DNA of 64,000 nucleotides from the NCBI RefSeq assembly GCF_963506605.1, contig NC_083284.1, forward strand, positions 30,194,001 to 30,258,000. The letters run 5' to 3'. Of this stretch, positions 5,153-64,000 are shown piece by piece; position 1 is the stretch's first letter, and every line of letters starts with the position of its first letter. The notes under the pieces are model-generated. The model saw nothing but the letters and a program-made list of their open reading frames with translations. It did no database searches and had not been told where the DNA came from. This DNA comes from Zootoca vivipara (Eukaryota). Position numbers and translations under genes: made by a program.

Positions 5153-5229
<77 letters not shown>
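5153..5229. repeat. Compound (GT)n(GA)n microsatellite
   Basis: Directly visible. Confidence 0.95.

Positions 5230-18303: not shown

Positions 18304-18355
<52 letters not shown>
18304..18355. repeat. (AG)n microsatellite
   Basis: Directly visible. Confidence 0.95.
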
Positions 18356-30900: not shown

Positions 30901-32453
30901 TATGTGCATTGTATATATTGACTGTCCTTGATTTCCCTGACCTGGGAATTGCTTTAGACAACTGTGCATGGAGCAGCTGTTCTGTGTGTGCAGACTTCTG
31001 TTGCATTTGGAAAGTGTGGGGTGCAGAGATTCCCTTCTTGTGCTTATGCATATGGGTACCTTCTGTAGATCTATCCGATTGCAGATCACTGAAGGCACAC
31101 ATTTCTGTTCTACCCCACAGTGAAAATGGAAATTCATCTTGTCTTATGTTGCTGTGTACCACTTTGTGGGTCTCTCTCTCTTTTTTGGTGCTATGTGTTA
31201 TTTGTTATACTGAAGTCTCTTGGCCTGAGGGGTCAGCACCCTTGAGAGTGCCCTGTGTGCTGGGAAATGTTTATGCTAACTTTTAAATTACTTTGGAAAT
31301 CTCTACAGAAGGCTGAGCTGAGCACCAGGACTGAGATTTCTTTTTCTGCAGGTGATGACTTAGACACTGATCTGCTGCTTCTTAAAGCCATCAAAAGTTT
31401 TTGTGTAATAGTTAAGACATTCTCTCAGATGGTCTTGCAATGGCCGAGGGCATCAATATTAATTTCTTTAAATAATAATAATAAAAAGATAGGGAAGTAA
31501 AGGCAGCTGCGGCAGCTGCAGCAGCTGCTAGCCTTTGGGTCACATCGTAGAGCCAGGTCCCTCGTCACTCTGGATGCATGTAAGGGGGCAGCATCAGTTA
31601 TAAAATATAGGAAGTTGTAATAATGCAGTGACAGTACACAGCTCTCTGTAAAGTCCTTAGGCATCAGCATCCACCTGTAATGTCACTCTTCTGGTTCAGG
31701 AAGGATATGAAGGGTGGGGGGAAATTCCAAGTAGAAGAAATTAAACCCAGATTGGGCCAAAGATGAATAATATTGTGGGGGGGGGATAGGAAGGAGTGAC
31801 TTTTCATAGGCCAGAGGAGAGAATATTCAGCCAGTTCTTATTCACAGCCTATAAATAATATTTAACCAAACAAAATAAATGAAGGAAAGAGGTCGTTCAT
31901 GGCTGCAGGTGTGGACTGAAGGGAGCAATGACAGGATGCTGCAGCAGGAAATGTGTATGATGTGAATTGGTAAATGTTTAATGGTTAAGACACTGAGAGG
32001 TCAGATGGATGGCTGCATTATTATCACTACCCATAACAGCTTTGACAGGGTAGCTGAAATAATACGTTGTCTCTGATAGCCTAATTCAATTTAATCTTTC
32101 TTCAGTGGCTCCACAGCTGGATCTTAGTGGCTTCCAGAGAACGACCCTTTAACTGGCAGGTGTGTTAGCAAGAAGCATAATGTTTTCCTGGCTGAACCAA
32201 ATATGAAGTTGGTTCCGCAGGATGGGTGTACAAGTCAGGATCCGAATGTTCAGCAATTTGCAAATGGTGGCTTGACAATGAAAGAATTATTGGGTGATAT
32301 CCAAGTGAGATATACTCATAAAAGAACCATTATCAATTAAGTTTAAGATTTCTGTGGCTCTACTCTGAGTACAACTGACAGTGGATATTATCCATTGCTT
32401 TTAATATGCCAGTGTCTGTACATCTGCAAGAACAGGCCTATGCCACTGATGAG

Positions 32454-32913
32454 CATAGCTGCCAAGTCCCGGTTGGAAAAATACGGGATCAGCAGCGCCG
32501 GCACTGGAAGTCGCTTCTACGCATGTCCAGACATGCGTAGAAGCGACTTCTGCCACTGGCTGCCCGCAACCCGTCACCTTAACCGACGACAGAGATCCCC
32601 TCACCTTCCCTAGACACTTGTCAGTGTCCCCAGGACCGGCGGTGGCGAGGGCTGGGGAGAGGCAAGAGAAGGAAGGGGGAGACAGAGCCGGGGATTGGAG
32701 CTGAGCCCTGAGCTGGGGGCTGACAGCAGCGGCGATCGCTCATCTACCCCGTCTGCAGCCATGACTACTGCAGCAGCAGTAGCAGCAACAGCAGCAGGAG
32801 AGAGAGGGGGAGAGAGAGAGAGAGGCTGGCGAGGGAAGAGCCCTCTCCACACACTCACACAATGTGCATGTCACAAGGCGGGGGAGGGCAGGGGAGAGGA
32901 GAGGCAGAGCGGT

Positions 32914-32948
<35 letters not shown>

Positions 32949-33325
32949 GCCCGGCTTCTCGGGGGTGGGAGAAAGCTTAGCCCTGGCTCCTTCTGAGGTG
33001 CAACTTAATCGATGAGTCGCTTGGAGGAGGGGCTCTGACTCTGGGGTAGGGAGGGGGAAGATCGTAAATGGCAGGACCGGCCTCCGAGTCACCACAGCAG
33101 CCACCGAGTGCTTCCCTCCGCCACCTCCATAGAGATCGGACCAACTCACCGCCGCTTCTAGCACATACCGAGACAGCCCCACTAACTTTATTACACAGTG
33201 CGCAGCGAAAGCGGCACCGGAAGAAATCGGGGGAATTACGGGATATTTTGCCATTCGGGATGACAGCGGGAAACGGCTTTAAAAAGGGGGGTTTCCTGGG
33301 GAAAACGGGAGACTTGGCAGCTATG
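32454..33325. mobile_element. Non-autonomous hAT-type DNA transposon carrying captured gene fragments (Pack-hAT)
   Basis: TIRs catagctgccaagtc (32454-32468) and gacttggcagctatg (33311-33325) are perfect 15-bp inverted repeats. TSD ctgatgag at 32446-32453 and 33326-33333. No transposase; interior GC/CpG-rich. Confidence 0.92.
32706..32800 (-). pseudogene. PIP4P2: Captured fragment of PIP4P2 (TMEM55A) exon 1: GCT-rich 5'UTR plus first ~19 codons
   Basis: Minus-strand ATG at 32762 gives MAADGVDERSPLLSAPSSG, versus recalled vertebrate PIP4P2 N-terminus MAADGVDERSPLLSASHSG. Similarity stops abruptly and the frame ends at TAG 32612-32610. Confidence 0.88.
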
Positions 33326-33734
33326 CTGATGAGGCAGGGTGAGGTGTCCATTTTGAGTGGCAGAAGCCCAAGAGGCAGCACCCACCTTGCCTCCTCCTCC
33401 TCCTGTCCTGCCACCTCCATCTTCAGCAGAGAAGTGGCACTGGCAGCAGCACCTGTTTCTGGCAAGATCTCATTAGATCTCATGGAGCTCACGAGATTTC
33501 TCAGACAGTCGGCACCACTGCCAATGGTTTGCAGGTGCACAACGCAGGTAATAGAGGAGAGGCCTCAGCAGCAGGGTAGCAGTAGGTGGGGGAAGCTAAT
33601 TTTGCCTCAAGCAGTCCTGAAAGGCACACAACGTATATTAGAAATAAAACATTAATTGGATTTTTCAGTGTATTAATTGTGGAAAATGCCACTTTAGAAT
33701 ATTACACCATAGGGTCTGGTTTCTCGCCCATATC

Positions 33735-33850
33735 TGAAAAGTTAATTTCAAAGGTACATTTATATAACGGAATAATAATTGATGGGGTTTGTTCCCCCCA
33801 TGTGAAAAGTTAATTTCAAAGGTACATTTATATAAAGGAATAATAATTGA
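33735..33850. repeat. Direct duplication, 48-bp core, period 68
   Basis: tgaaaagttaatttcaaaggtacatttatataa(c/a)ggaataataattga at 33735-33782 and 33803-33850. Confidence 0.9.

Positions 33851-38180: not shown

Positions 38181-38184
<4 letters not shown>

Positions 38185-38234
<50 letters not shown>
38185..38234. repeat. Compound (CT)n(CA)n microsatellite
   Basis: Directly visible. Confidence 0.9.
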
Positions 38235-38304
38235 ACCCCTTCTTCAAATTCAGTGGGACATCTCTGTAATGTGAGGGCTTCATTTAGAACTGCTAGATGC
38301 TCTG

Positions 38305-41798: not shown

Positions 41799-41860
<62 letters not shown>
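41799..41860. repeat. (TC)n microsatellite
   Basis: Directly visible. Confidence 0.95.
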
Positions 41861-51160: not shown

Positions 51161-53909
51161 CAGGGATGGAGAGAGTAAGTGTGTTGTGTGCCTGCAAATG
51201 TGGTTGCATGTGTATAAATTTAGGTGGGGATGTGTGCAAAATAGTCACACCCACACTGGTATTTGGCGCTTGGAGGCGTGCCTGTCACTGCAGCCCTCAG
51301 TTCTCCTTCCTCAAAAAAGTTGCTATCTCTATCTTAAAAGGTCAGCAAATGAGTTTAACAATTACTTAAGCTGTAATAGTTTAAAGGAAAGCTAAACAGG
51401 GCAATTTGATTTCCTTTGACTTTGGGTGAGTGAAAAGGGGGAATGACTTATTCAGTTCCAGCTTTTCAAGCAGCATGGCAAGCGCACAAAAGCACGACTC
51501 TTTATTATGTCACCACACACTCAGTGGGCTTTCGAAGGCATTTCTGTGTCAAGAGGAGAGCTAACCACTTCTTGTCCACACTACTGGGCTGTTCTTGCAA
51601 TTCTTGGCCGGCTGCCCGGTTTGTCTGTCATTCATCCTGCGTTTTTTCCCCCTTCGCCCTTGACAAGGAGTACTCTCAGGCCCCAGGAACACATGCCTCT
51701 GACTGCTAGGTGATACGTAGTGATTAATAGAAATAATCATCTTAATTCGTGAAATAAAATCAATTGCCCTATACATGCAGAAGCCCCAGACAAGATGTAC
51801 GCAAAAAAAAAAAAAAAAAACCTTGTCTGCACGGCTGCCTCTTATGAAACTGGGACAGCGCTCAAGATTTATGTTTTGCCTTCCCCTTCCAGGCTTGCCC
51901 TGGAGTGGCTTAACTCGACACCCCAATAAATCTTTGCACAAACTAATTTGACAGAATATTTAGACTTATAAATGAGTTTGTTTCAATCAGGGGAGCCAGG
52001 CTGGGAAACACAAAGTGCATCTTTGTTTGGGAATTCGAGGCAGGAAGTATACATTGGGACAGAGGGCCTTGGATCAATCCCTGGCTCTAGTGTTTATTTC
52101 ATTAGACAATGTATCAGAATTCTCTTTAGCATGCCTGAAAATGTACAGAGGGTGTGTTAGGATTAAGTGGTACAAATAGTGGTATCTAAGTGACTGACTA
52201 TGTATACAGTAATGTTTATTCATCTGTTTCCGTGCAGTTTGAAAGGGATAAAATTTATCAGGCACATGCATTTCTTCACCCACTAATAATTTTGTTTCCC
52301 ATGCCACAGTGGTTAATGAATGCTTTTTTTGGTGTGATGGATTTTTACGCAAGAAGATAAAACACTACAGTCTTTACTAAAAATAGCACTTGCCTGCCTT
52401 CCATTCCCATGTACAGTACAAACAACAGTGGAACTCTTAGTATGCCCCTTCCTAAGCACGCTTTGTGTGCAACTGTAAGAATTTGCTTTCAACTCCTTTT
52501 TTCCTGCTCTTTCACTGTGGTGGGATATGACAAGTCACAGTTTGGCCAAGTGTGCTCTAAGGTTTTACATCAGAACTGGAGAACCAATTACCACGAGTGT
52601 TTTTGACTGGCAGAAATGTGCCACTGAACTCCCATTAGGCCTCTTGCTTTCCTGGATGAAAGACAGACAGTGTGAGTGTGTGCAGAAAATAGCCTACTGT
52701 ACAATGATAAAAGTTATATTCATTGCTTGTCCCGCCTTTGCCTCTAAACCTGCCTACTGCTGGCACACGGCTCTCAGAAGGTGGCCCAGAAAGGAAGGTG
52801 GCCCTCAAGCTTGGGAAGATTTGTCACCTCTAATGTAGGAGAAGGCGCTCCTCTAGGTCCTTTGAGATGAAGCTATTGAGAGCTAAGATAAGCACAAGTA
52901 CTTTGAATTGAATTTGGAAATGGGCCAACAGCCAATGCAGTTGTTTCAGAAATGGAAGATATAGTCCCTTTGGCTGGTCCCTGCTGTATTTAGACTAACT
53001 GAAATTTTTGGGAAGTTTTCAAAGGCACCCCCACTACCACTATGAACAAAGACATTCCCAGAGTGTTAATTTGTTGCAGAAAAAACAACAATGAAGAATA
53101 TTGTGGCACCTTAAAGAGTCACAAATTAATTATGGCATTTGCTTCTGTGGACTAGACTCCATCAGAGGCATGTTGTTATTTTGTGTGTGTGTGCGTGTGT
53201 GTGTGTTGATCACAGTTTATTATTCACTTCCAACAAACCATGCACATATACTTACAAACTAAGGATGTCATTTCATCCAGCTGTTGTGTTGGGCTCAGCT
53301 TTCTTTGACTAATTTGTTAGTTTTGAAAGATGTCACGGTACTCTTTGATGAGATGCTGTTTGTCCTGGTGAAAAAAATTACTTGAGATGTGATTAGTTTC
53401 TTTGGTGCAAAAGAGAAGCTTATTTGAATATCTTATGGGATGTGACAGATTCATGTACATGGTGAGGAAGAGAGCAAAAAGAATTCTGAAAATCAGTTGC
53501 CCACCATCACACTAGTTTCCTCTGTGTTTTATTTTTAACAAAATGGTAGTGTGCAAATAAATATAAATATGGAATAAGGCATCTGGTGGCCTCTTTCTTC
53601 TTAGATCATATTCCTTCCGTAGCTCTCTGATGGGATATATGCACAAGGACACAGTGGTTAGTAGAAAGGATTATCAAATAGATGCTTGCCTTGCCAACGC
53701 AAACTATAATTGCCACATATAAGCTGGCTCAGCATTTTTGTGGGCTGCCTGTTTCCTTTCTTTTGCTAGGCAGTTAAAAAGATGTTGGAGGAAAAGAGTA
53801 GAAACAATGCTTTTTTTTTCCTAAGGAGAGGATCTTTTCACCCTAAAATACTTGCCCATTAGAAAAAGAAATAACTCATTTTTAAATACCCCCCCCCCCA
53901 AAATGTAGC

Positions 53910-57470: not shown

Positions 57471-59175
57471 CATGACTTTAAACAGTTTTGGCCTCTCCCA
57501 AAGAACCTTGGAGACTGTAGTTTGTTAAGAGTGCTGAGATTTATTCAGAGACCCCCCTATTCCCACCATAGAGTGACAGCTCTCAGAGTTTCTGGATGGC
57601 AGGAGAGATATTGATTTTTAAACTACTCTGTCAAGTGTATGAGGAAAATACACTTAACAACTCTCAGCACCCTTAAGAAACTTCCAAGGATTCTTTGGGG
57701 AAACCAGGAGCCATAAATCTCAAAGTTGTATAATAGTGCTTTAATTGTATAGTTTGTATAGTTTAATTGTATAGTTTGCATTGTATTAGAGAAGAGTTCG
57801 GGCAAGCATCACAGAATTTATTTTTCCACTGAGCTTCTTTCTATTCATTAAATTTTTACTACCCTCATTCGGTTAAGATTGGATTTAATTCTCCATTTCA
57901 AAAAAAATGCCAAAATGTGTTGGATTTTGGCTTTCCTGATCAAAGAAGCTTGGTATTGTAATGCATTGTTCATATCCCCCGAAGAGTGGGAGATATGCAA
58001 ATTTGTTGGATGAACAACACAAGTTTCAAAAAAATATTTGTGCTGGTTTTTATACTTGGATTATTTCCATCCATGTTTCTGAAACCAGAAATCTCTTGTC
58101 AATAGTGATGAAGTGTGTTGCTGAAGTACAATGACGTTTCTGTCTGTCAATCTGCTTATCTCTTTTGACTTTTAAGTTGTCCCTCGCTCTCCCCCTCCCC
58201 TTTCCAGCCCTGCTAAACAATCAGCTATCTAATGTTTGCTGAAGGCAGCTCGGCCCCCCAACTATGCCATTATCTCCTTGGTGGTCTTCACGTTTTGGTG
58301 ACCACTTATTGGTCCAGGCCTTCTGGGAATCCTTTGCTTTCACTATAGATAGAAACCATCTGTTGCCCGCCTTTTCTTTATTGGGAGATTATTAGTATGT
58401 GTCTACCTAGCAGTGGAACTCTAAGCTCTTGGCTTTTTAAATGCAGCATCGGCAAGCCTATGAGAACTAAACAATCTTGCTTACACAGGAGAAGGAGTAA
58501 ACAGCTTTGGCAAATAATTTCAGACACTGCCATTAGTGTTTGTAAAAGATATAAACATAACTTGTGAAAAATAAAATGTGTTTGGGTTTAAGCATGGAAA
58601 GGGAGAGGGAGAGATCCAGAGAGATGTTACAACAACTTGCTTCCAATATTGACTTTAAAAAAAAACCCTAACACTCTCATACAAGGAAGGGCAAATCAGA
58701 ACTCATTTTTAATGTTAAAAGTTGCACTCTTTCTTTCTAGCTGTTGAACATGCCAATATGTAAACATTTCAGGGAGAATTTTACACCACCTCATCTTTAT
58801 GTCAAGCAGCATTTAATGGTTGAATGATCCCGTGCCCCAGGTCTTGGCAGCTATCCTCTGGGGTCCAACTTTTAGGGATTACATTGACAGTCAGTCAGTG
58901 GACCATGTCCAATGTAAACTAGACTAGGACCATTTAAAATCAGTTACTATCAACAAGTCAAATTAGCTTTATGTAGGTTACAGGCTTTTTCTTGGGAGAT
59001 TTCATAACAATGTGGAATTTTAACCATCACGGGACTTTTTCTCCCATTTGTGTTTTCAGAAAAGTTCCTGAAACATCAGATTGCGCACTGCTTACCTGAT
59101 TCAATGTAAAGTTAAGCAACTTGCACTACTTATATTTAATAAATGAATCACGAGCTTTCCCCCTTTCCTTCATAG

Positions 59176-59307
59176 GTGGAAATAACTCTTCAAGATGTCA
59201 ATGACAACCCGCCAGTGTTCCCTACAGATATGCTTGATCTGACTGTCGAAGAAAATATCGGAGATGGTTCTAAAATAATGCAGCTGACAGCTATGGATGC
59301 TGACGAG
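59176..59307 (+). CDS. FAT4: FAT4 internal coding exon (132 bp, phase 0/0), cadherin repeat
   Basis: Acceptor ttcatag| and donor |gtagga. Translates VEITLQDVNDNPPVFPTDMLDLTVEENIGDGSKIMQLTAMDADE with cadherin DxNDNxP and AxDxD Ca-binding motifs. Matches my recollection of the second coding exon of vertebrate FAT4. Confidence 0.95.
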
Positions 59308-62300
59308 GTAGGATATTATTGCTTCTTTGAAGGGTAGCAGGACACTTCTGTCACAACAATGTTGTTAGGCATAGATTTCCAGCCTTGTTTCTACTCCACC
59401 CACTGATTTTTGCCTGGAAGTGGGTGGCGTGGAGTGGAAAAATGCAAGTGTTTAATTTTTTCCTGCGAGTTGAGACTGCCCATTCTATCCCTGTGCGCCT
59501 GATTCCAGGACATTTCAGAACCCCAGGTGGTCTCTTGTTCTCAGAGACTCCCCTAGTGGGGACCTTACTTAAATTAATTTGATTGCCCTCATCTATCACA
59601 GGGCATTGCTTGCTTTGCTTTATTTAATATAGCTACAATGTTTTTTCTCCTGTGTGTCTGTCCTCTACTTCCTGTTTTCTAGTCTCTTGTCTTGCCTATC
59701 TTTCATCCATTCCCTCTCTTCCTTTTGTACAGTTTCCTGTTTTCCTGGTCCTTCTTTCTGCTGGGAGATGGTTCAAACTCTCCCTCATGCCAGCCTTTTA
59801 ACAGTTGCTGGATGCTCTCTGCCTTTTCTCAACATGCGGTACACCTGAACAGCTCTTCTTCTGGTCCCAAAGCCTACATATTGGGGGCCACACATTTTGG
59901 ACCAACCTCACCTGCCACAGCCCCCTCAAATAGATCCAATACATTTTGCAGAAATGTGTGAGGTGGCAGATTCCTAAACATTGGAGAGCCACATGGGGGG
60001 GGGGTGTTAAGGCACCATTTCTTCCTTTTCTCTGTGTCTGCCTTGCATGGCATGATTTTATTAATCTATTTTTTATATCTCTTGCCCTCTTCAGACGTTG
60101 TCCCCTCATGTTCTTTTTCGACACAGGATCTGAGTGCTGCATCTTGATGTTCATACAAGTAGCTTGACCACCTATAGTGCACATACATTGATTTGCAAGA
60201 AGGCTTCCACATGTCCCAGAGTTCCAAATCGTATGGAAATCTTCATGTGTCCAGCTGTATCTGTGAAAGCTATGTCACAATAGTCATTTATGTTAGCTGC
60301 ATAGTCACCAGTGGCAGGGCTAGCCAGCATGTCCAAAGTTGAGTAATTTGACAGTTATTAATGCCTGAAGGAAGTTTCTGTCATGCGCCTATATCCAAGA
60401 AAGCCTCTGAGCTTCAGAAGAGTATCAGAAATCCGTGACATACGAAAACCTCTACTTGAAATCTGTAGTGACATGTTTTTTAAAGTGTGCATGCCAATGA
60501 CAAGACTAGGTTCAGGCTTCCTTGAAACCCATTCCCTAAACGTGTAAAAGAGTGTTTCATATGACAGAAATTGATTGCTGCATTTGGCTAATATTCAGCT
60601 TAATGGGATCAAGGTGCTCACTATTTTGCAATCTGCACAGAAGGTGTAACTTTTTCTCTAGTGCCATGGGATGAATATTAATGATAGCTATGGTATCTCA
60701 CAGCACAGTACTACTGTACTTCAAAAGTGTTGACAGGGAGCTTCTAGATTTTCTTCTTACTTGCCTAATTTATAGGATTTACTCCTTACCCACAGCAGGA
60801 GTTATGGTAGAGGAGTCTATAGCTGGGTCACATTGTTGTAAAAACAATGTATCAACTTGGATGATAAAGATTGTAACACTTGAGTAATATAAGATTATTC
60901 TTGAAAGAATCTGTTCAAACATTTTAATTATACTTTTACGAGTAAGTGTTCTACACACTGCACAGACATTGAGTATGAAAGTAATACTGTGGAATGTATC
61001 CCCTGAGTAGGCAAGGAAGTAAGACTACAGCGAATTTTTGTTCACAGAAATGTGGAGGCAAAATAAGGGTTTTCAGAGTCAAAGATTTCTCAGACCCCTT
61101 GCTTCTCTTTTTATGTGTCATCACAACTGCTGCACAGTGCATTTTTTTAAAAACAATTTCTTCCTGAGAGAATTGCAGCCTATCAAGGATCATATAGAAA
61201 ATGTTACCTAGCCACACATCCAGTTACGTTGGTCAACATAACGCAGTCAATCACAGTGAAAACTAGACGCACTATCTCACTCTGATGAGGCTTGATGATG
61301 TCATCGCATTGACAAATCTGCTTGGCTACATGGCTTTGAAGTCCATTCAGAGTGAGAGCAGTACTCCCTGCCATTCCATTGAACAGATAAACATTTTGTT
61401 TGTTTTCATAGTCTTGTGAATCACCAAAATGAGGAAGTGTGTTTTACAAGACAATGTTCAGTATGAAACACAGCCCTATGCTTCATATCAGCCCTCCAAA
61501 AAAGTTCATATGGGTATATGATTTCCTCAAGACTTAGCTCAGATCTGTCCTGTCCTACCCCAGTTAGGCTCCAAGTTTTCCCCAAAGCAAGCTGCCTTGG
61601 GTATTGTAAAATAGAAAGACAGTATACAAATTAAAAGTCATCATCATCATCATCACTTTTAATTTGTATACTGTCTTTCTATTTTACAATACCCAAGGCA
61701 GTTTACAAGCTGAAGAAAGAAAGAATGTACACTATATAACAATCTAATCCAATACAAAAATGTGATAATAAAACATAACTTTAAAACAGGCAACTTATAT
61801 CAAATAAAGTAATATTCAACAATCCATTAGAATGATATAGAATAATATTAAATATCAGCATATAAAATTAAACAGAAATCCACTCTTAACAATTATAATA
61901 AAAAAATTCTAAACTATAATCAATAAAACAACAGCAAGTCACGGTGCATAAAATAATACAATGCAAACTGAGAAGCAGAGACTGGAGGGTGGGGCAATGC
62001 AGGTGGAGGAAGGCCTTGCCTGATGAAGTCTCTATCCTCGCAGTTCTTCCTTAACTATCATCTCTTAACCAGGTGCTATAGTGGAGTAGGGGTGAAGAAC
62101 TGGATCCCCCACTCCCACAGGATGGGTAAGAAGGGCTGCCCACTGGTGAGTCACCTGACAACACAACATCACATGGCCCATTTTTGCAGAGTGCTGGGTA
62201 CAGAAGGGGCACAGCAGTATCTTTCTCTTTTATATGATCAGTGCCAGTGCAAGTAAATACATCAGGAATGACAGATTGCTGCAAAAAATGTTTATTTGGC

Positions 62301-62570: not shown

Positions 62571-62832
62571 GGTGCAAATGCTCTGGTCACTTACACCATC
62601 ATCAGTGGTGCAGACGACAGCTTCCATATCGATCCAGAATCGGGAGAGTTGATAGCCACCAAGCGCTTGGACCGAGAACGCCGTTCTAAATATTCTCTGC
62701 TAGTCCGTGCTGATGATGGCCTGCAGTCTTCAGATATGAGAATAAACATTACTATTAGTGATGTTAATGATCATATACCCAAGTTCTCCAAACCTTGCTA
62801 TTCCTTTGACATACCAGAAGATACCACTCCAG
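62571..62832 (+). CDS. FAT4: FAT4 next coding exon (262 bp, phase 0/1), cadherin repeat
   Basis: Polypyrimidine tract and tttag| acceptor, |gtgaat donor. Translates GANALVTYTIISGADDSFHIDPESGELIATKRLDRERRSKYSLLVRADDGLQSSDMRINITISDVNDHIPKFSKPCYSFDIPEDTTP(G), with LDRE and DxNDH motifs, in frame with the previous exon. Confidence 0.95.
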
Positions 62833-64000
62833 GTGAATAGTAGATGTCATTACTGTCCTTATCATTCCTGCTTCCTTGTGCTTTTAACAGCTATAATAAC
62901 TCAGAATTCTTTGGAAATATTTTGGTCTTGTGCGTTCCACAAAAGTTTTTGGATTTCAGCAAATTAAATATCAGTTAAATAAATGATCAGTCAACCAATG
63001 ACATTAAAAGGGCCAGGTATCCAGGCTTAACTGATTTGTGCATAAATTCTCTGCTTATGATTTTGTTTACTGCACGCTATGGACTCGCTGCCCTTGTCCC
63101 ATAAAACTCTTACATTGCTACTACAATTACTACAACTTGAAGTTGTCACTCTCAGAAGAGATAGGCAAATATATGCACATTATTATCCAAATGTTAGCTT
63201 GTTCTAGCCCAGATCTCTCTTTTCCAAGCTTGTACAGGTGGAGGAGCGAGAATAAGTTCACTAGATTCCCTCTGTTTCTTTTTCTTTTTAAAAAATTATC
63301 ATTCTTTGACTGGCATAAGAACAGAATTTAGAATAAGTGAAAACACATGTGATATCTGAAGTACTATATAATACTCTGTTCCAAGTATAAAGAGAAATTC
63401 AAAACCAGCAAGTGGAGTGATTAGCTGCTGACCATTTATAACATCTCGCTATGTATCAGGAGTTCTTGGCACACCTATGCATAAGAGGCTGCGAAAGGAG
63501 GTTAGGTTATCTCTTTGAAAAAGTTATAAATGTGCATTTATTTTCTCAAAGATCTGTGAAGAAATAGGGTAGTACACCATATTGAAACATGGTTGCTCCT
63601 TAAAGGAGTTTTACTGGCCTTATCTTAAACACCATTTTCCCATTAAGAGCATAACTGTATCATGCTTTTTTCCAAGGAGGGAAAAAAAAAGTTAAACTTC
63701 AGTTAAAATTTTGCTGGGCAGAGATTTTGGTTTGCATATATATTCAAAGGCTTTGTTCATGATAACACTAAACTATGGGTTATTAAAACATTACCCTTCC
63801 AACTCTACAGTTCTATGATTTGACATAGTATGGGATGCTAGCTGTGAACAAACTATAGTTAAGCTGCTGCGCAGAGTTCACAAATCACACCAAGGCTCAA
63901 TATGCTGTGTGAACCTGTGTTATTTGTTTCCTACCAACAAACAACAAACTGAAAGAATGGTTAGTTGTTGGCTACATACAATGGTTTGTTTTAACTATGG

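Follow-up and report, generated by a model that had tools for sequence, protein, structure and literature searches.

Within a window of 64,000 nucleotides of the Zootoca vivipara genome (assembly GCF_963506605.1, contig NC_083284.1, 30,194,001 to 30,258,000), the element at 32454-33325 is very probably a transposed, non-autonomous Pack-TIR of hAT type, that is, one which has the ends of a repeat family, carries the starts of two host genes, moved with this load, inserted after the split of Z. vivipara from two related species and is now silent. All positions are counted over this 64-kb window and strands are given relative to its plus strand. We compared contigs from one run of the same species (species A) and from one run each of the related species B and C over 32000-33800, apart from repeats at 32761-32956, together with raw RNA reads of species A (about 6% of one RNA run) over the same region. 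An initial annotation of the sequence had proposed a hAT transposon loaded with pieces of host-gene 5' ends at this site.

Boundaries, empty site and carrier family

The element is delimited by two perfect 15-bp terminal inverted repeats (TIRs), CATAGCTGCCAAGTC on the left (32454-32468, plus strand) and its exact reverse complement on the right (33311-33325), and these are framed by a perfect 8-bp target-site duplication (TSD), CTGATGAG, at 32446-32453 and 33326-33333. Both features stand as the initial annotation had described them. The TIRs form the longest inverted pair that a repeat finder detected in the region and are the only two perfect copies of this sequence in the 64 kb; near matches at 58841 and 19612 are at chance level. 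By chance, a 15-bp inverted pair combined with an 8-bp direct pair within 3 kb would be expected only ~3e-6 times over 64 kb. With its TIRs the element measures 872 bp, leaving 842 bp between them, so the earlier figure of 872 bp for a GC- and CpG-rich interior belongs to the whole element, while the richness itself is evident: GC content is 0.59 in the element against 0.41 in the window (0.55-0.64 in the interior against about 0.41 in the flanks), and the observed/expected (o/e) CpG ratio is 0.60 against 0.25. Comparison of the interior open reading frames (ORFs) with Pfam gave nothing above threshold (five ORFs yielded only sub-threshold DUF1272), in keeping with the claimed lack of a transposase. 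Rfam over 32000-33800 returned chance-level matches far under the gathering scores, among them a miRNA-like call on the hairpin described below, and a full-text literature search with the TIR sequence recovered unrelated PCR primers only.

The insertion can be compared directly with the site before it. Contigs of species B (4,361 nt) and C (771 nt) join 32445 to 33326, skipping 880 bases, and eight letters at the joint fit either side, i.e. a single CTGATGAG; the loaded element, ends included, is missing at the orthologous site in both species. This joint is a clean pre-insertion site with a single ctgatgag, which the initial annotation had looked to relatives to supply, and the insertion is therefore younger than the split of this species from B and C. 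An independent species A contig of 4,624 nt covers 32000-32503 with 0 differences and a second covers 33304-33764, so the insertion is no assembly artefact and the suspicion of a chimera falls away; no empty allele is present in the species A contig run. The flanks have diverged by about 4-6% from B and 4-9% from C. In A, B and C alike, contig depth over both of them (32305-32445 and 33334-33463) is 5-9 times that of single-copy sequence, which indicates that the three species share an older interspersed repeat here, into which the element inserted. On the right (33334-33463) the flank is GC-rich yet CpG-poor (o/e 0.14), and a 65-bp tandem-like direct duplication of 89% identity (33718-33782/33786-33850) lies just downstream of the insertion. 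The intact TIRs and TSD and the empty sites of B and C uphold the view that the cargo was moved here by transposition. That this happened 'probably recently' holds in a relative sense only, since the event follows the B/C split (flanks 4-9% diverged) and the cargo is already ~8% from its donor.

The ends of the element belong to a family with many other members. Nearly all of the 6,446 species A contigs that could be placed fall on 32454-32550 and 33228-33325 (B contributes 261 contigs, C 71), and summed depth in A reaches 270,301 in bin 32488-32548 and 422,047 in bin 33281-33341 against 13-20 in single-copy flanks, summed contig depth not being equivalent to copy number. Hundreds of A contigs lose likeness exactly at 32454 and 33325/33326 (61 end it at 32454 and 345 leave at 33325/33326) and are mutually unlike beyond these points (agreement 0.31-0.34), so the ends occupy many independent insertion sites. 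The other TIR-bounded copies that the initial annotation had called for thus exist, their termini being found in thousands of A contigs with unlike flanks and in fewer of B and C. Self-BLAST of each element piece found no other family copy in the 64-kb window, all other matches being to dinucleotide microsatellites (GA/TC, AC/GT) at 5153-5229, 18304-18355, 38181-38245, 41799-41860 and 53179-53206. Hundreds of RNA reads of both strands end or begin in the right terminus (33281-33326) and pass into a few consistent sequences (agreement 0.88-0.97), from which it follows that some family members lie inside abundantly expressed transcripts.

In the family-owned left end (32454-32550, plus strand) the TIR runs directly into TCCCG, an inverted copy of the subterminal motif CGGGA, which is also present in this end once in direct orientation. 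The same end holds a perfect palindrome of 21+21 nt (32507-32527/32530-32550, 44 nt in all), which as single-stranded DNA is calculated to form a hairpin of -37.7 kcal/mol (z = -8.9). The family-owned right end (33228-33325, plus strand) has four direct CGGGA copies (33239, 33256, 33267 and 33306) ahead of the right TIR. Family likeness stops at the outer edge of the hairpin, where 58 loose ends coincide at 32550, and in other members the sequence passes from 32523-32550 straight to 33228-33307 by way of 6-36 letters of other sequence, so the ordinary member is a short miniature inverted-repeat transposable element (MITE) made of the two ends. In the present element the cargo begins just beyond the hairpin. 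An 11-nt junction stretch (32551-32561) between family and donor likeness is either an imperfect extension of the palindrome (it pairs with 32497-32503) or filler. The right junction stretch (33211-33227) includes AAATC, common to other members before 33228, and GGCACCGGAAG (33213-33223), which resembles GGCACTGGAAG (32500-32510) bordering the left hairpin on its inner side; the recurrence of this sequence at the right cargo boundary may represent a longer microhomology used in capture.

Two host gene starts in the interior

The larger frame of the cargo comes from one donor, D1, whose two pieces lie on the minus strand at 32562-32703 (left) and 33044-33210 (right). In a species B contig (1,843 nt, depth 8.8) and a species C contig (3,122 nt, depth 63), 32562-32703 and 33053-33210 are found side by side, the ten letters between them, GGGTAGGGAG, being those of 33044-33053 in the element. 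These contigs are at single-copy depth and continue on both sides for hundreds of bases of unlike sequence without family ends; they differ from the element at 12 of 142 positions in the left piece and 10-12 of 158 in the right. One species A contig joins the D1 pieces likewise, and the joint 32703->33053 is crossed by nine A RNA reads with six different starts, first mate on the plus strand. From the joined pieces in A, B and C contigs and in RNA we conclude that 32562-32703 plus 33044-33210 were copied from one contiguous, single-copy, transcribed locus. The expectation that interior segments would match single-copy host loci is borne out here, B and C each contributing a single-copy contig and A contributing RNA across the joint.

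RNA from the D1 locus covers the interval between ~33165 and 32610, and its first mates map to the plus strand, which suggests a minus-strand transcript; the reads cover 32610-32731 in the region of the left piece, and coverage falls to 0.8 in bin 32549-32609. At this drop (32609) the minus strand reads GGGAAG|GTGAGG. The first exon would accordingly be split between the two pieces, its 5' part, with RNA coverage from ~33165, following promoter-proximal sequence in the right piece and its 3' part lying in the left piece, where it ends at ~32610 and is succeeded by the splice donor GTGAGG (32609) and ~47 nt of intron. D1 as a whole looks like a short stretch of promoter-proximal sequence, in which CTTCCGG occurs at 33216-33222, followed by a first exon of ~215 nt without a convincing ORF, a splice donor and ~47 nt of intron, all of an unnamed gene. 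A complete 47-nt mini-exon with both splice sites had been proposed at 32598-32690. Its splice donor at 32609 is supported, but the supposed acceptor is not, because D1 RNA runs unbroken through it from ~33158 to 32610; the complete mini-exon is rejected and the stretch is the 3' part of the D1 first exon.

The second cargo interrupts the first. The 340 bases from 32704 to 33043, on the minus strand and thus in the same orientation as D1, are skipped at the D1 locus of B and C and in A RNA. The minus strand from an ATG at 32762 to 32706 (codons 1-19) translates to MAADGVDERSPLLSAPSSG, upstream of which lie (GT)16, (TC)13 and (TGC)9. In a search of 5.8 billion proteins, restricted to short candidates, the peptide had a sole match, a UniRef fragment named phosphatidylinositol-4,5-bisphosphate 4-phosphatase 2 (PIP4P2), to which 18 of the 19 residues are identical from the first methionine. 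The match to this mammalian protein (95% identity) is short and weak by its database-wide E-value of 0.94, the pairwise value being 3e-11, and the name retrieved is the one predicted beforehand. The PIP4P2 exon-1 piece recognised in the initial annotation is thus supported by 18 of 19 residues of the named N-terminus. PIP4P2 likeness ends at codon 19, which is the junction with D1. A PDB sequence search with the PIP4P2-like ORF found no match, nor did a full-text literature search with the peptide MAADGVDERSPLL. In B and C, 32957-33035 finds its match in contigs other than those of D1, with four differences in 79, and these are plausibly the PIP4P2 donor upstream of the microsatellites. The insert ends in CTG, the same three nucleotides as at 32701-32703 preceding it; such microhomology has a median of 2 bp at Pack-TIR breakpoints (Tan et al. 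2021, PMC8277862).

The cargo also appears to be repeated in species A. It is represented there by 3-6 distinct contigs per position with a summed depth of 56-308 (3-20 times single copy), and in B and C at single-copy depth only. A 226-nt A contig bridges 32957-33088 over the PIP4P2/D1 junction with nine differences and four gaps, so the composite has at least one more copy, a diverged one. These figures give an indication only of several to about twenty cargo copies in A.

Capture, movement and competing explanations

We envisage the following course of events. The ordinary relatives are short, MITE-like elements consisting of ends only, and in this branch of the family host DNA came to fill the space between the ends. 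D1 would have been captured first, as ~310 bp spanning its promoter-proximal region, first exon, splice donor and the start of intron 1, and a second capture would have placed 340 bp of PIP4P2, upstream sequence and 19 codons, within D1, with the 3-nt CTG microhomology at its bounds. The host DNA may have entered by template switching within the hairpin or next to it, where the interiors of family members diverge, while the DNA was repaired or replicated; fork stalling and gap filling of this sort have been proposed for Pack-TIRs. The loaded element then moved as a unit, with a transposase presumably provided in trans, and inserted into the older repeat upstream of a pair of cadherin exons after the split from B and C. 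Such a route would correspond to the transposition-dependent 'FoSTeST' model, by which Tan et al. 2021 account for the rare multicopy Pack-TIRs.

Several points weigh against this reconstruction. No second full copy of the composite with its own TSD is seen among the A contigs. The cargo has diverged by ~8%, roughly half of this outside CpG, which is a large amount for an insertion that followed a 4-6% split and whose 46 terminal bases are still perfect, and it is not fully explained; the excess might stem from mutagenic synthesis during repair, from GC-to-AT pressure, or from a capture that is older but was amplified in A alone. The PIP4P2 donor of this species is seen in part (32957-33035) and not as one piece, and as 32761-32956 lies outside the read comparison, it is an assumption that 32704-33043 is one contiguous donor segment. 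The assignment to hAT, finally, is drawn from the TSD and TIR, neither a transposase nor an autonomous partner being seen. The TIR starts CATAG, the third base of which departs from the YARNG with which hAT TIRs usually start, and P, Merlin and some other superfamilies also give 8-bp duplications.

The element is nevertheless probably a non-autonomous one of hAT type. Typical hAT ends combine an 8-bp TSD, a short TIR (about 10-25 bp) and subterminal pentamers; the hAT target pattern is nTnnnnAn, which the TSD (cTgatgAg) fits, and Ac/Ds-like ends typically pair a short TIR with pentamers directly repeated in the subterminal region. The hAT identity given in the initial annotation is consistent with TSD length, target pattern and TIR length. 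The same structure could have been built by another superfamily with 8-bp TSDs, e.g. P or Merlin, as the CATAG start and the missing transposase would allow, but this is unlikely given the target pattern, the Ac/Ds-like combination of short TIR and subterminal pentamers, and the dominance of hAT among the sources of animal Pack-TIRs, 208 of the 370 found in 100 animal genomes (PMC8277862).

Less likely still is a filling of the element in place, in which a plain family member inserted here and host DNA was copied into it later without transposition. Gap filling is the commonest route for single-copy animal Pack-TIRs (Tan et al. 2021, PMC8277862), and the cargo adjoins the hairpin, a possible fragile site. 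However, it is the whole element and not merely the cargo that is missing from B and C, and cargo pieces, with at least one cargo-cargo junction (32957-33088), recur in further diverged A contigs. In-place filling is unlikely because of these two observations, which transposition of the loaded element accommodates.

This copy of the loaded element is decaying. Between the cargo and the D1 donor 6-8.5% of positions (about 8%) differ, and as the donor letters at the listed positions are the same in A, B, C and RNA, the changes lie on the cargo branch. At six of the 11 listed differences (32625, 32643, 32664, 33109, 33163 and 33165) a donor CpG has become TpG or CpA in the element, a pattern which is the signature of methylated DNA; with a CpG o/e ratio of 0.36-0.78 the cargo lies below the family ends, which have 1.06-1.13. 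No element-specific RNA is found in the ~6% of one run that was compared, all reads at each discriminating position (5/5 to 12/12) carrying the donor letters. A chimeric minus-strand ORF of 19 PIP4P2 and 31 D1-derived codons stops before the D1 splice donor, so a coding role is not evident. This copy is most likely a silent passenger rather than a working promoter or gene.

The neighbourhood of the element is that of a cadherin gene. Two conserved coding exons with cadherin repeats lie on the plus strand at 59177-59308, reading VEITLQDVNDNPPVF... with a clear AG acceptor and GT donor, and at ~62571-62837. A protein search with the latter, an exon of 89 amino acids, gave 64 matches of 79-96% identity, drawn from many assemblies, that are either unnamed or 'cadherin domain-containing'; no protein match carries the name FAT4, and the earlier naming of the gene as FAT4 is not confirmed. 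A protein atlas yielded cadherin clusters, some of them FAT4-like, and the PDB many cadherins, none decisive. No earlier cadherin exon is evident in the window. The element most likely lies in a long intron upstream of the cadherin exons, with both cargos antisense to the cadherin gene. That the captured D1 promoter and exon serve as a new antisense promoter in this intron is very improbable, for although promoter-proximal sequence, a first exon and its intact GT donor all lie on the minus strand of the cargo, the reads at all discriminating positions, from ~6% of one RNA run, have the letters of the donor and the CpG decay is that expected of methylated silent DNA.

Least credible is an ordinary non-autonomous family with a GC-rich core of its own and a chance or ancient likeness to host genes, which could appeal to the CpG-rich family ends (o/e 1.06-1.13) and to the variable short cores of many members, but would have to account for core pieces that are single-copy in B and C in long contigs without family ends, for D1 pieces transcribed in A as one exon, and for a 19-codon PIP4P2 match that starts at the ATG with 95% identity to the mammalian protein.

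Comparison with known capture systems

Among plant elements, the maize Ds1-type and heterogeneous Ds of the Ac/Ds system are similar in their short shared TIRs, subterminal repeats, unrelated variable interiors and movement in trans. Unlike these Ds, the present element has no known partner, a vertebrate host and an interior that is demonstrably host gene DNA. With the Pack-MULEs of rice and maize it shares the presence of several gene fragments in one element and, as it appears, the amplification of the loaded element, and Pack-MULEs prefer GC-rich gene 5' ends. They have 9-10-bp TSDs, long TIRs and a Mutator transposase, and with a TSD of 8 bp and TIRs of 15 bp membership of this group is rejected. 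The suggestion that one family shuffles the first exons of CpG islands finds support here only in the two 5'-end cargos of this element. We regard it as a tentative and somewhat doubtful proposal that the hAT MITE family is, in this lineage of lizards, a vertebrate counterpart of the Pack-MULEs, in which CpG-island promoters and first exons, at times more than one to an element, would be picked up repeatedly through template switching at the hairpin and amplified to tens of copies. If true, potential promoters, start codons and splice donors would be scattered through introns, this element being one instance. Should many such elements share this family, the lizard would be a natural system for asking why 5' CpG-island ends are captured in preference, and would also test whether the scattered copies become promoters or new exons.

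Among the routes by which exons are shuffled in plants, the capture of gene fragments by DNA transposons is a major one; in animals such capture is considered rare and is mostly put down to repair in place. Most of the 370 animal Pack-TIRs of Tan et al. 2021 (PMC8277862) arose without transposition, and only four of them are multicopy, three in Xenopus and one in alligator. Gene-fragment capture is known in animals, but copies that demonstrably jumped and multiplied are rarely documented. The present element has the ends of an identifiable TIR family and an interior unrelated to transposable elements with a parental copy elsewhere (D1), which are the marks of a Pack-TIR. It resembles the multicopy animal cases, such as Pack-hAT-N8_XT of Xenopus tropicalis, which carries 291 bp of the CAPSL 5' UTR (PMC8277862), in being a non-autonomous element, probably a hAT, with identifiable ends and a few hundred bp from a gene 5' end, in being absent together with its ends from the outgroup site, in apparently having more than one copy and in the microhomology at a breakpoint. 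It differs from them in its squamate host, lizards not figuring in the main text of that study (PMC8277862), in a nested cargo made of two gene starts whose donors are unlinked, and in a carrier family that is very abundant and appears recently active. A literature search for a Pack-hAT in squamates or lacertids found nothing specific. The locus offers a clean, fully dated animal case of the transposed route, with an exact empty site, two donors and signs of amplification, and is a new, well-resolved member of the rare class of transposed Pack-TIRs, in a squamate and with nested two-donor cargo.

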